DNA of 64,000 bases from Epithemia pelagica (GCA_946965045.2 OX337232.1:1116001-1180000); one strand, 5' to 3'; positions 9,425 through 59,658 are shown, counted from the stretch's first letter. Translations and numbers: made by a program. Notes: a model not told the origin generated them from the sequence alone.

Positions 9425-10065
9425 AGTCCAACAATGGACTTTCTTTTCACCGTTCTCAGTCAAAATTTACCAACAAACTCAGTCGTTTCCTCGATCACTG
9501 AGAGTCTGCGATTACGGACGATAAGGGGATGATGATATACTCGTACCGACTTGTATCCGATGTTTAGACGAACCATGAATGACATCCAAGAACTCAATCG
9601 AAGTGGAAAAACCGCGAGCGACCGAAAATTACGCGACCCATCTCATACGCCTCATCTTTTCTAAACTTAATTGATGGTTGAATCTTATTGAGTATATCTT
9701 GTAACAGAAGATAACAAACGCTGGGAAGTGGATGCGCGGATAGATCTTTGCAACACACCCCCTAGCGGGGGTGTTTTTGAAGTTTTGGTTGGATACACGA
9801 AATTAAACCTCTAGCCATACCCGCTAGGGGGTGATTTGCGACAAAAATGAGAGAGAAATCCTTTTCCTATGTATGCTATGTACTGCTTGTTAATATTTGG
9901 ATTAGGAGTATGAACGACAATGAGACGACCATTTTGTACAAGGTATCCCTTGCGTAGAAAGATTGAGTCCCTGTGGATCCCTCATGATGTAAATGTACAT
10001 AACGAACGACTGAAGTATTACTCCATAAAGAGCACTTTTGGTCTAGAAGTGTGGTCGAGGAATAA
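9425..10065. repeat. Intergenic block, copy 1 (upstream of ALDH21); duplicated at 11177-11590
   Basis: Collinear similarity including a 67-bp identical stretch, 9951-10017 = 11472-11538. Confidence 0.9.
9756..9833. mobile_element. 78-bp MITE-like element with 14-bp terminal inverted repeats
   Basis: CACCCCCTAGCGGG ... CCCGCTAGGGGGTG; lies in the ~270-bp segment absent from the second copy of the duplicated block; no clear TSD. Confidence 0.5.
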
Positions 10066-10101
10066 GCTGTGCAATCCAAGTAGTAACAGTAGGTTTACAA
10101 A

Positions 10102-11052
10102 TTATTCTACTAGATCTATTTTGTCACCATGCGATGGACACGAAAGACCAACAATGGTCCGACTTGAAACGTCGTAATCAATCATCACCGGCGCCGTCAC
10201 TGCCAGTAGGGCATCTTTTTCCGCGCTACAACCACGCATATTGGGTTTGGTTGTGGAAGCATTCACAAAATTGGTGGTACTGGTTTGCACAACGCCACGG
10301 CCCCAGTGAACGTGTCCCGAGAGAACGACTGGGATATTTCGTTGGGTTGCTATCTCTGTCAATGGCCTTAGTCCCTGCCAAGCTTTCATATGCAACTCCA
10401 ACACATGGTCCAGTACCTCCGATTTCTCAAGGTAGGGATTGATATGTGATATGAGGATATCGGGGGAACCCACCATACGGCTATAGTCATTTTGCAGAGA
10501 GGCTTCCCACGTCATGCCGTGCAGGTGCAGTCTGAACAATTCGACGCTCTGATTGCGCAAGTAGTAGATCTTGCGAATCATGCGCTTTCGATGTATACGG
10601 GCTTGTCATTTGGCGAATTCGTTCTCTAGATCAATGTGTGGAGCCGGGGGACGGGAAATATCATGGTTGCCGTGGACTACGACCACGTGATGGTAGTGTG
10701 AGGGCAGACCGTGCATTGTTTCGCCAGAACCATCGGATGAAGGGTTGTTTTCGTCCGAAGACAGCCACCGACAAAAGGACTGTACATGCTCCAATGATCC
10801 ACGGTCGGCAAAATCACCGCAGTGAATAAGAATGGATGGCGGTGATGGAGTTGGTGGTGGTATTTGTAGTGACGGATCGCCCTCGGAAGGAGGATCAGCA
10901 GCAGCAGGCTGTGGCGAGAGCCGTGAGACTGCCGCATGTCGATTGTGCGTATCGGAAATCACCACCAGCCTCACCACGCTTCGCTTTGGAGTTGCCAAAG
11001 CGATAGAGTGAGGTGTATTGTTGAGTCCGAGTCCGTCTGTGGTTTCCATCAC
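10102..11052 (-). pseudogene. Calcineurin-like metallophosphoesterase (MPPED/239FB-like) with one in-frame TGA at 10606-10608
   Basis: Motifs ISDTH, HCGDF, HGNHD, LISH and SGHVH; ORFs 10606..11052 and 10102..10581 are in the same frame. Confidence 0.75.
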
Positions 11053-11176
11053 TGTTGTTCAAAGGGAGAATGGTAAGAGTACTCGCATGAATATGGTACT
11101 TCTCCTCTTTTTGGTGCAGGACTGCATCGCAGTCTGGTCTCTGGTGAGATGTTGTTCACCAACTGCGACTGAATAC

Positions 11177-11590
11177 AGTCCAACAATTGAATTTCGTTCT
11201 CAGTCAAAACTTCACCAACAAAATCAGCCGTTTCCTCGATTCACTGACAGTCTGCAATTAGGGAGGATAACAGGATGATGATATACCGACTTGTATCCCA
11301 TGTGTAGAGCATTTCAGAAGACGAACCATGTGATCTTCGGAGAGAAAAATCCTTTTGCTATCTATGCTAGGAGTATGTATTACTTCTCTATATTAGGAGT
11401 ACTCCTACTCCTAGACAGATTCCATCCTGAATCAACGACAATGAGATGACCTTTTTGCATAAGGTATCCCATGCGTAGAAAGATTGAGTCCCTGTGGATC
11501 CCTCATGATGTAAATGTACATAACGAACGACTGAAGTAGTGTTACTCCATATGTAGCACTGTCTACCGTAGAAGTGTGGTCGACAAATAA
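11177..11590. repeat. Intergenic block, copy 2 (upstream of the metallophosphoesterase)
   Basis: Direct repeat of 9425-9577 + 9849-10065. Confidence 0.9.
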
Positions 11591-11835
11591 AAAGGAGTGT
11601 TTGGTTGAGAGGGTATGCGTTAACTATGCCTACCGCGGTGTTACTTGGAGTATGTTGGTGTAAGTGAAATGAAACGGCGCGGAATCCTACCGCGGGCACT
11701 GTGATTGACGCAAATGTAAACCTCCCATCCTCTGTCTTTTTGTTCAATTTGCAAAGAACAGAGGCTCCAAAGCACGATCGGTGTGCTCGAGAAACATATT
11801 GGGTGTGTATTGTCCTAGGGTTCCCATGAATCCTT

Positions 11836-57013: not shown

Positions 57014-57062
<49 letters not shown>

Positions 57063-57258
57063 TGTGTAATACGGAATATGAATATAGTTGTCGTCGTCCC
57101 TTGGCATAAAGATTTCCAAACCGAATGTTTGGGGCAGTGTTGACGCTCCAGCATTCGAATCCTTTCGAAAGATGGTTTTGATCGTTACTCCTTCAGTAAA
57201 ATGTGCAACAAGGATTAACAGAGAAGCTTGCGGCAATACGGATGGAAGGACAGACCAA
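56927..57258. repeat. Intergenic block, copy 1 (upstream of NAF1), includes (AG)21 at 57015-57056; duplicated at 59324-59658
   Basis: ~50-bp identity CTTGTCCCACTACGGTCGCAACTCTTGTTTGGATTTTGTTGGACGGC, plus ACGCTCCAGCATTCGAATCCTTTCGAAA and GCGGCAATACGGATGGA. Confidence 0.9.
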
Positions 57259-57406
57259 AGGCTTCGGGAGTACCCATCGGAGCAGTTAGTCTATGGGAGA
57301 CGCTCGATTAGCCCTAAAAGGGCTCTTTACGAATGGCAGTAACATTATGACACTCAAAGTCAACATGAAAGAAACACGCATTATCAAACACTACCAAATC
57401 ACAAGA

Positions 57407-59277
57407 CTAGTAGCATGCATATGGATCATTGTCTCTAAGCAGTAACTGTTCGATCATCGTCGCTTCGAAAATCGCAGAATACTGCGGGGTAATACCGGAT
57501 ATGTTCTCCATAGACTTTGTGAGCTCGTTCTTGTCGTTCGTCAAAATCGGCATGAATTCCATCTTGCGACAAGACTCCGTTGGAGAGATGAAGATTGTTA
57601 CAACCTCATCAAGAATCTTTAGGCGAGGGTGAGACTTCCCCATACTCTTCTTCATGTCTTGAATAGCGTTCTTCAGATGCACCGCGTACATTGTATGCGA
57701 TGGCTTGTCCCCAGAGTGACCATTTGCGGTAACTGTCATCTGGAGACCTACTAGCAGCGAGCTTGCTTCGATCTCCTTCTTCTTATTATTATTATCATCG
57801 CCTTCAGCACAAAAAAAGGTCGAAGCAGGACAGAGAAGAAAAGAGTCATAGGTTGGAAAGTCTGTGGTAATGGGATGGAAGTAAATGTCCATTGGTTCTT
57901 CTGTGGCTTCAAGGCCAATGATCTCAAGCGAATGGCCGGGAAAGCTAACAATCGAAGCCCTTGAAAACTCGAGAGATACCTTCGCCTTAGCTCTTATGAT
58001 TCCCTTCTTTAGACTTGGCGGGTGGCAACCAAGCAGTGTGATGTTCTTGGTAATGAAGGCATATTGACTGAGTCGTTTGTGCACTTCTTGCTCGAAAAGA
58101 GATCCGTAAGCGTCTTGATGGTTTTCCTCGATACTTAAGGCGGCAACAACAGTTGAAAGAGCTTTCGAACCATGTTGGATCACATTTTCCATCAGTTGCT
58201 CCCCCATGTAGAAGGATGCAAAGTGGATTCGATACGTGTCATCAACTGGTGTATGATGGAAGAGCAATGACTTTGCCTTTGTCATCTCTTCTTGCCCAAT
58301 AACTTGCTGTTCAGCTAGGATCTGAATGGATTTGACCGTCGAATTTGGGAGTGGTTCCATTTCGATATTGTCCTTCGAAATTTGTTTCTGTCGGAGCTTG
58401 TTCGCGAATACAAGTGCTGAACGAGCTGAACCACCATATCGACGAAATCCTTCCATCACATAATCCGCATCAAGAGAGCGAACATCGGGCCAGATTAAAC
58501 CAAGCTTCAGAGCGTACAGGAGTTCTTCGCCGCGCCATAAATCTGCGGATCGAATGTATGCGCTTTCTTCCAACAATGTCTTTCGTAGGACAGCAAAGAA
58601 TTCTGTTTGTCCAGCGGATACAGTGTAGATCTCGCGTCTCTCGTCGCCTGGATCGCGAATGATGAGTGCAGAACCGCATCTCCGCCATTGCCTCAAGCAT
58701 TCATGGAAATCGAACATTTCTTCTTCCAGTACCTTGTACCAGAACTCATTGCCATTAGGTTGTTTCCCTTTGATCAACCGTAAGTCAGCATCCAGCTGCA
58801 GATATTCACCAGACTTCCGCTGCAACTCTGTTGGACTCTTCTTGCTGAAAGCCCAGACACGCGTATTGTAGTAAAGAACCACAAATTCTCCGCGATCAAA
58901 GTACGTGCGGGCTGCATAGAGGGCAAAAAATGTCTTTCCAATCCCCGCTGTGCCGGTAACAACCGACCTTTGCTGCACTCCAAAATCATGCGAGTCAAAT
59001 CGTCTATCCAAAAAACCAACCAGCCTTTCATAGCAAGATCTCTCAATTAAATATTTGCTCTCTTCTTCCCTTTCCCATGAGGCTCATCAAGAATGATATA
59101 CTGCCTGAAAGGACAGTCATCATGGGGAATGGTGATTGGAGGGGCAAACAGCGCGTTGTGGAGAAACGTCGGGAATACTTGACTTGCTGCTAGCTCCTCG
59201 ATCTGCCTCTCGTCTGCTGAAACTTGCAAAGGCTCAACACCATGTAAATAATCGTAAATGAATTTCCTCTTCTTCAT
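57407..59277 (-). CDS. Crinkler/RHS-like (CR) P-loop NTPase + restriction-endonuclease-fold protein; frameshift about 59065
   Basis: YLIERSCYERL...VVTGTAGIGKTFF, YGGSAR, GSLFEQEVH, YFHPITTDFPTYDSF...LQMTV...H; the N-terminal 59047..59277 ORF is in another frame. Confidence 0.8.
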
Positions 59278-59323
59278 AGTGCTTCGCGTCGTGTTGTGTT
59301 GTTTACAAGAACAAAATGGCCCC

Positions 59324-59658
59324 TTTTGGCTTTCGTTCTGGATTTTGCACTTGTCCCACTACGGTCGCAACTCTTGTTTGGATTTTGTTGGACGGCTTTT
59401 TCACTGCTTCGTTCGGACCGATCGTTCGAGAGATCGAGAGAGAGAGGAACTGAGGAGGGATGTGTAATACGGAATATGGTCGTCGTCGTCCCTTGGTTCT
59501 TCCCCATTCCCCAAGAGAAAAGATTGTTCCAAAAATCGAATTTGGGGCAGTGTCACGCTTTTTTTTACGCTCCAGCATTCGAATCCTTTCGAAACAAGCT
59601 TGATCAGTGTACTCCTTCAGTGTATATTTGCGGCAATACGGATGGAGGGACAGACCAA
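59324..59658. repeat. Intergenic block, copy 2 (upstream of the CR NTPase-REase gene)
   Basis: Direct repeat of 56927-57258, offset about 2400 bp. Confidence 0.9.

Follow-up and report, generated by a model that had tools for sequence, protein, structure and literature searches.

Gene insertion with duplication of a neighbour's upstream DNA in the diatom Epithemia pelagica: one event on C17 and three candidate cassettes

Results

Three cassettes in the window

We analysed a 64,000-nucleotide stretch of the genome of the diatom Epithemia pelagica (GCA_946965045.2, OX337232.1:1116001-1180000), referred to as the window. It contains three direct-repeat pairs of non-coding DNA, 214-641 bp long, each of which lies around one extra gene just 5' of a resident gene. 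The resident gene is called the host, the extra gene the passenger (Y1 to Y3), the repeated DNA the block and the whole arrangement the cassette; A, B and C denote the host-proximal blocks and A', B' and C' the distal ones (Table 1). Elsewhere in this genome, on chromosome C17, a 109-bp target duplication accompanied the insertion of a gene-sized unit, and the donor, filled and empty sites of this event have been identified. Gene insertion that duplicates the upstream DNA of a neighbour operates in this genome, as seen at that locus, and is plausible for the three window cassettes. That these arose by insertion with target duplication, as at C17, is the reading we favour, with a probability of roughly 55%.

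The block pairs were located by repeat finding and by self-BLAST of the window. An earlier note on this DNA, written by a model from the sequence, had described three cassettes in the order host, block, passenger, block copy, with periods of about 1.5-2.4 kb and identical cores of 34-67 bp. All pairs were recovered where it had placed them, which confirms its observation. The start-to-start spacings of 1491-2424 bp comprise 1491-1746 bp for the A pair, 2139-2160 bp for the B pair and 2392-2424 bp for the C pair. Identity over aligned columns is 79.6% (A/A'), 76.2% (B/B') and 81.9% (C/C'), with Jukes-Cantor distances of 0.24, 0.29 and 0.21, and the longest identical runs are 67, 34 and 47 bp, respectively. 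These cores exceed what evenly spread differences would give, being reached in 0 (A), 27 (B) and 17 (C) of 20000 shuffles. The boundaries are sharp at all eight block edges. Moreover, host and passenger have the same orientation in all three cassettes.

Each block occurs in just two copies, both local, in the 60.5-Mb genome, and self-comparison of the window shows that blocks A, B and C are mutually unrelated. This removes the possibility, raised in the earlier note, that the blocks are high-copy dispersed repeats, and a dispersed-repeat or long terminal repeat (LTR) origin is ruled out by the two copies per block. The one exception to this uniqueness is a palindromic element inside block A, resembling a miniature inverted-repeat transposable element (MITE), which entered block A after the block duplication. 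It makes up part of the surplus length of A over A'. Rfam and tRNA searches found no Rfam family and no tRNA anywhere in the window, blocks included.

A further concern was that uncollapsed or mis-joined haplotypes might mimic such repeats, since the scaffold switches haplotype at an assembly gap. However, no cassette spans the gap. Positions 5047-25805 of the window are 100% identical to contig ctg1340l (ENA sample ERZ21939226), and positions 44635-64000 are 100% identical to contig ctg1119l. Contig ctg1340l extends over the right-hand region as well, in a version of its own that is 92-93% identical and missing from the scaffolded genome; because this single contig covers the whole region, it backs order and linkage across the gap. 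The other haplotype of the left side is represented by ctg1331l, which is 97.2% identical overall. Both ctg1340l and ctg1331l contain cassettes 1 and 2, and both ctg1119l and ctg1340l contain cassette 3, so that every cassette is found with both blocks on both haplotypes. Moreover, the block copies differ by 18-24%, compared to 0.1-7% between haplotypes. The cassettes, present on separate long-read contigs and on both haplotypes, are therefore no assembly artefacts; we consider the residual chance of an artefact negligible.

A young insertion on C17

The paralogue loci of the passengers were examined for the same block-gene-block layout. One of them, on C17 (L042 in Table 1), has two blocks that enclose a 1101-bp unit, consisting of an intact Uma2-like open reading frame (ORF) and flanks of 116 bp (5') and 64 bp (3'). 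The gene that follows the cassette has the same orientation. The unit is 98% identical to a donor copy situated 2.2 Mb away on the same chromosome (C17:467762-468784, L052). Both copies are collinear, the sole indel being one of 82 bp in the coding sequence, and the end of their homology is at most 4 bp (ACAA) from the inner block edge on one side and 1 bp (G) on the other. The donor copy has neither a flanking repeat nor any block sequence. In addition, a paralogous segment at C17:2708465-2709770 matches the left flank plus block at 89% and the block plus right flank at 85%. Since both matches fall on one shared 111-bp stretch, the segment represents an empty site that has the block once. The second haplotype contig likewise carries the filled structure.

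The C17 junctions show the microhomologies ACAA and G, and they lack poly(A) as well as terminal repeats of either the inverted or the long kind. The insertion is younger than the segmental duplication that surrounds it, and it looks like the product of break repair rather than of transposase action. The earlier note had proposed a gene-mobility route that leaves a gene between copies of a neighbour's upstream region. Such a route exists in this genome, as the C17 event demonstrates; its extension to the window cassettes is made by analogy. One form of the route that the note had put forward is a circle carrying block and passenger, which integrates by a single homologous crossover in the upstream region of the host. 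This would yield direct repeats around the insert, but at C17 it is contradicted by a donor copy that lacks the block sequence and by homology that breaks off at most 4 bp from the inner edges of the blocks, and the window blocks are found nowhere else in the genome. We consider circle integration very unlikely.

Origin of the window cassettes

If the window cassettes arose as the C17 cassette did, each would be an old, fixed insertion of a gene-sized promoter-less unit, made up of an ORF and about 40-560 bp per side, that entered the intergenic DNA 5' of a resident gene. A widely staggered chromosome break would start the event, or else a template switch whose point of return lies upstream of the point of exit. 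Fill-in of both long single-stranded ends would then duplicate 0.2-0.65 kb of the target around the captured DNA, and the joins would be made by end joining or template switching, without transposase ends. As a result, the resident would keep one upstream copy and the newcomer would sit directly behind the other. Staggered breaks are an accepted cause of duplicated non-repetitive sequence at Drosophila inversion breakpoints (PMC1885836), and fill-in at breaks with overhangs yields tandem duplications (PMC8355091).

We infer that the upstream copy may serve as the promoter of the passenger. When C and C' of the two haplotypes are aligned together, all four sequences share the same cores, and a diagnostic C/A difference separates the two copies on both haplotypes. 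Judged from this alignment, the C/C' cores point to constraint on shared motifs in both copies, not to recent conversion.

The passengers could also be old residents, with only the block having been copied locally, either by tandem duplication and deletion or by a double template switch. We regard this as possible though doubtful. A locus on C10 (L043) fits duplication and deletion and not insertion. Its duplicated block takes in an entire HA-domain gene and the 5' portion of a PALP gene, and the copy lies 3.4-3.7 kb downstream of the source, just upstream of a GST-HIT gene. Between the copies are the remainder of the PALP gene and a Uma2-like gene. The likely history of L043 is a tandem duplication that cut through the PALP gene and a subsequent deletion.

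L043 is one of several observations that weigh against our favoured reading of the window cassettes, promoter use included; some of them favour local block copying. First, local direct repeats are frequent in the sampled loci, which were chosen as paralogue loci of the passengers. They flank the paralogue at 6 of 16 paralogue loci, and because about as many repeat pairs there flank no paralogue, no enrichment can be claimed. Second, the window passengers have no recognisable donors, Y1 being single-copy and the best paralogues of Y2 and Y3 being 51% identical. Third, the window cassettes are filled on both haplotypes, which leaves no empty allele, and no close sister species yielded an empty site. 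Fourth, insert 2 is less compact than the others, with 557 bp on its 5' side. Fifth, the segment adjoining block B (14448-14599) has an inverted copy, 69% identical (E=7.6e-15), at 18093-18270 past a Mito_carr gene, and this arrangement fits no simple model. Finally, block C is 0.3% divergent between the haplotypes, whereas C' is 11.9% divergent and thus the most diverged segment, with the shared cores kept; this makes it less likely that the passenger still requires its copy.

Local block copying, however, would require a pair of precise events for each of the three cassettes. Beside the window blocks, a search for leftovers of another passenger copy found none. Were A the copy, the upstream DNA of the aldehyde dehydrogenase gene (Aldedh) would have measured only about 75 bp beforehand. 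Moreover, the C17 event, which has the same anatomy, is an insertion.

The search for empty sites extended to related species. In the nearest other genome found (sample ERZ25042306), the orthologue of the exchanger gene that hosts cassette 2 has 65-77% amino acid identity and adjoins the same ABC-ABC-Mito_carr genes, which are inverted as a block relative to the exchanger. Y1, Y2 and Aldedh are absent near this orthologue; the region is rearranged and its non-coding DNA cannot be aligned. This absence speaks against an ancient synteny of the passengers, but it gives no empty site. A search with Naf1, the host of cassette 3, returned the other haplotype at 93%, all remaining matches being at most 40% identical, and the 40% match has unrelated neighbours. 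No spaced gene-bracketing repeats were found in about 45 kb of non-redundant sequence sampled from the related species (L059-L061, L060 and L061 being its two haplotypes) or in a 10.7-kb metagenome contig (L058). A plain 1.6-kb tandem duplication, 96.7% identical, was seen at L060 17137-20298 (related species, ctg3374l).

Passenger genes

In agreement with the earlier note, each passenger carries one lesion: an in-frame TGA in Y1, a frame change in Y2 and a frame break in Y3.

The reading frame of Y1 is broken by the single TGA at 10606-10608. Y1 matches Pfam Metallophos (PF00149) with 35.8 bits, above the gathering cut-off of 21.5, and its translation shows the metal-binding motifs D-x-H, G-D-x-x-D-R, G-N-H-D and G-H-x-H. 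Each half also matches PDC-S10, a PADLOC defence candidate (1e-11 and 2e-10). Y1 is present once in the genome.

Y2 has its frame change towards the 3' end, between the two ORFs listed in Table 1, and its family has 13 matches in the genome, Y2 counted among them. The match to Pfam Uma2 (PF05685) is weak: one of ten members, a paralogue, reaches at best 16 bits against a gathering cut-off of 27 (E=0.009). An AlphaFold model was built from ten family members and is of modest quality (predicted local distance difference test, pLDDT, 59; predicted template modelling score, pTM, 0.61). With this model, Foldseek ranks DUF820/Uma2 structures (1wdj, 6okh, 3ot2, 9y1l) in positions 1-7, at probabilities of 0.93-1.0 and target template modelling (TM) scores of 0.47-0.58. 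The Y2 family is thus predicted to have the DUF820 fold. Its P-D motif is nearly invariant, and the conserved core position that follows is an invariant glutamine. In the DUF820/Uma2 fold, this position usually holds an acidic residue, as part of the PD-(D/E)xK core. Between haplotypes, dN/dS of Y2 is 0.22, based on few sites.

In Y3 the frame break is near the N-terminus, between the two ORFs, and on the other haplotype there are two further 1-bp indels. The broken gene was not repaired; its pieces were searched singly, and alignments were made with intact natural paralogues. The Y3 ORF contains a Walker A motif, which is invariant across 13 family sequences. The family has a weak match to nSTAND_NTPase5, and its fold neighbours are STAND/AAA+ proteins. 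Y3 is a P-loop nucleoside triphosphatase (NTPase). There are four or so paralogous loci in the genome, 35-51% identical. An intact paralogue matches TIGR01631 Trypano_RHS at E=2.4e-5, far under the model cut-off. For a Nitzschia homologue (P0028), the Atlas neighbours are Crinkler and RHS clusters with TM scores of 0.5-0.57, and the whole-protein model of the family is dominated by the NTPase part. No Crinkler N-terminal header domain was found in the Y3 family, and no Pfam model reached its cut-off. Profile comparison showed no homology between the Uma2-like and Crinkler-type families.

The nature of these genes makes it conceivable that the passengers are self-mobilising, with the staggered target cut made by the nuclease or NTPase that they encode, which would define a new selfish gene unit. 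All three are of conflict type: a DUF820/Uma2 fold, a putative Crinkler/RHS type and a metallophosphoesterase matching PDC-S10. In addition, three gene-sized duplications of Uma2-like genes are recent, at 98%, 98% and 90% identity. Apart from the C17 pair, these are L049/L051, 37 kb apart on C8 (98% over 1.55 kb), and L046/L048, 77 kb apart on C1 (90% over 1 kb). No long target duplication was detected at L049/L051 or L046/L048. Yet five inserts that were compared share no terminal repeats, common end motif, target motif or poly(A) tract, the families are low-copy and mostly 27-54% identical, and the Uma2-like core has its invariant glutamine where a conserved acidic residue would be expected. 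All three window passengers carry lesions, and the enrichment of passenger families is not significant after removal of the index cases. Furthermore, a clean cassette on C9 (L057 in Table 1) encloses an ORF without a known family. The earlier note cites a proposal that Crinkler/RHS-type proteins derive from transposases or act as such; no evidence points to a transposase role of the passenger proteins, and we consider self-mobilisation improbable.

Retrocopying would be another way to obtain such units: complementary DNA would be integrated through target-primed reverse transcription, and a distant second-strand nick would produce the long target duplication. Indeed, six gene-sized units have flanks resembling untranslated regions, of about 15-130 bp on the 5' side (557 bp in insert 2) and 20-440 bp on the 3' side, and they have no promoter of their own and no introns. 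However, the parents are intronless too, so that intron loss cannot be scored. There is no 3' poly(A) in any insert, including the young one at 98% identity, which argues against ordinary retroposition. Copies mediated by long interspersed nuclear elements (LINEs) usually have far shorter target duplications, and the lengths observed here, 94, 109, 214-240, 341-344 and 414-641 bp, lie far outside that range. Retrocopying appears slightly less probable still than self-mobilisation.

A copy of the L057 ORF, including 15-20 bp on either side, is present on another chromosome at 90% identity. The 90% cluster of this ORF includes MMETSP and JGI sequences of other samples, and the first 100 bp of the L057 insert are a dispersed repeat. 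At L054 (G000:C4:3919000-3928999), a 115-bp direct-repeat pair, 80% identical (4123-4232 and 7540-7652), lies around a Crinkler-type paralogue and also encloses a 337-amino-acid ORF that matches the PADLOC candidate PDC-S04 (E=2.7e-9).

Host genes and further features of the window

The coordinates of all features are given in Table 1. The exchanger and Aldedh were searched as separate ORF pieces, with no joined spliced model, and the closest named relatives of the exchanger are from raphid pennate diatoms.

Table 1. Features of the window and comparison loci elsewhere in the genome.
Feature	Position	Strand	Details
Host 1, aldehyde dehydrogenase (Aldedh), several ORF pieces	7477-9385	-	ATG at 9385; Pfam Aldedh E=1.3e-76 on ORF 7477-8502
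Block A, host-proximal	9425-10065	-	40 bp upstream of Aldedh ATG; 2 copies in genome
Palindromic MITE-like dispersed element inside block A	9750-9839	 	~90 bp; inverted repeat; 16 matches elsewhere in genome; absent from A'
Insert 1 (Y1, metallophosphoesterase)	10066-11176	-	1111 bp; ORFs 10606-11052 and 10102-10581, one frame; flanks 124 bp (5') and 37 bp (3')
Block A', distal, in front of Y1	11177-11590	-	246 bp beyond stop of exchanger gene
Host 2, Na/Ca(K) exchanger, two ORF pieces	11836-13988	-	Pfam Na_Ca_ex on both pieces
Block B, host-proximal	14197-14436	-	2 copies in genome
Insert 2 (Y2, Uma2/DUF820-like)	14437-16361	-	1925 bp; ORFs 15047-15805 and 14881-15084, different frames
Block B', distal	16362-16575	-	
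Assembly gap	30732-30931		Joins contigs of two haplotypes, ctg1340l (left) and ctg1119l (right)
Host 3, Naf1/Gar1-domain protein	54635-56806	-	723 amino acids; Pfam Gar1 E=3.9e-6; precomputed PF04410 on relatives
Block C, host-proximal	56927-57267	-	121 bp upstream of Naf1 ATG
Insert 3 (Y3, NTPase of putative Crinkler/RHS type)	57268-59323	-	2056 bp; ORFs 59047-59277 and 57407-59011, different frames; flanks 46 bp (5') and 139 bp (3')
Block C', distal, in front of Y3	59324-59667	-	
WD40 gene, upstream neighbour of cassette 3	61144-62271	-	Gene calls with Pfam WD40
L042, filled site	G000:C17:2656000-2665999, 4320-4428 and 5530-5638		109-bp blocks, 97% identical
L043	G000:C10:969000-978999, 1602-3163 and 5269-6572		1.3-1.5-kb block duplicated at 89-98%
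L057	G000:C9:2338000-2347999, 8293-9408		Clean single-ORF cassette; 94-bp blocks, 99% identical; 252-amino-acid ORF without family

Several features outside the cassettes were also recorded. A fourth direct-repeat pair in the window, 71% identical (44699-44870 and 45650-45830), lies inside a TIR-domain gene and was rejected as a cassette, since it represents the internal domain repeats of this gene. Two inverted repeats of 93 bp, 98% identical and 1.2 kb apart (42478-42570 and 43768-43860), may mark a breakpoint duplication or the two termini of a small transposon. A 569-bp tandem array of nested palindromes occupies 3749-5085, and related copies are found at L054 7740-8572, beside the Crinkler-type paralogue on C4. 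Divergence between ctg1340l and ctg1331l is 0.1-0.6% over 7000-15000 and 3-7% over 15000-18500; the jump near 15000 looks like the edge of a loss-of-heterozygosity tract. Finally, a presence/absence polymorphism concerns about 4.3 kb inside a putative recombinase island (46763-51091): ctg1119l has the segment and the ctg1340l haplotype lacks it, the two being otherwise collinear at 90-93%.

Discussion

The cassettes resemble duplications ascribed to staggered breaks (PMC1885836) and to fill-in (PMC8355091), in which non-repetitive breakpoint sequence is doubled with sharp edges and without transposon ends, the joins are blunt or show microhomology, and the empty site has a single copy, as seen here at C17. 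There are also differences. The copies at the ends of staggered-break inversions (PMC1885836) are inverted, whereas here they are direct and lie around a gene-sized insert. Fill-in duplications (PMC8355091) are simple tandems, whereas here the copies flank an inserted unit. Moreover, neither description includes a recurrent 5' intergenic placement that hands the insert the upstream DNA of a neighbour.

As in transposon target-site duplications, direct repeats of the target surround a unit, and a filled and an empty site can be compared. However, transposon duplications have a fixed length of 2-20 bp per family, whereas those described here vary from 94 to 641 bp, and unlike transposable elements the units are low-copy and have no terminal repeats, end motifs or transposase. 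A classical transposable element, be it a DNA transposon, an LTR element or a Helitron, was rejected, as there are no shared termini and no short duplication of fixed length. Processed retrogenes are likewise intronless, promoter-less, gene-sized copies at a new site that depend on local regulatory DNA. The units described here differ from them in that they lack poly(A) and in that the promoter would be duplicated with the insertion instead of being borrowed in place.

As for the passengers, the Y3 family may be related to Crinkler and trypanosome RHS proteins, and the Y2 family is predicted to share the DUF820 fold of Uma2 genes. Unlike the Crinkler effectors of pathogens, the genes studied here come from a free-living diatom, and no Crinkler header domain was found. 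A bolder reading would be that conflict-type genes (Uma2-like, Crinkler/RHS-type, PLD-type and phosphoesterase) are undescribed mobile units without terminal repeats. They would integrate at widely staggered, possibly self-made breaks, duplicate 0.1-0.65 kb of the neighbour's 5' region and thereby gain a promoter, or even a start codon and a targeting leader. We offer this reading as speculative and rather unlikely.

If gene insertion with target duplication is general, it would constitute a DNA-level route that gives a promoter-less gene copy ready-made regulatory DNA of a neighbour at its new site. Where the break lies in the first exon of the neighbour, a start codon and a targeting leader would come too. 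Such a route would explain the immediate expression of dispersed duplicates, and possibly of foreign genes, in compact diatom genomes. It would place unrelated gene pairs under related control and could feed the fast turnover of defence-type genes. The C17 event provides a concrete, datable example, and the mechanism is testable in a culturable diatom.

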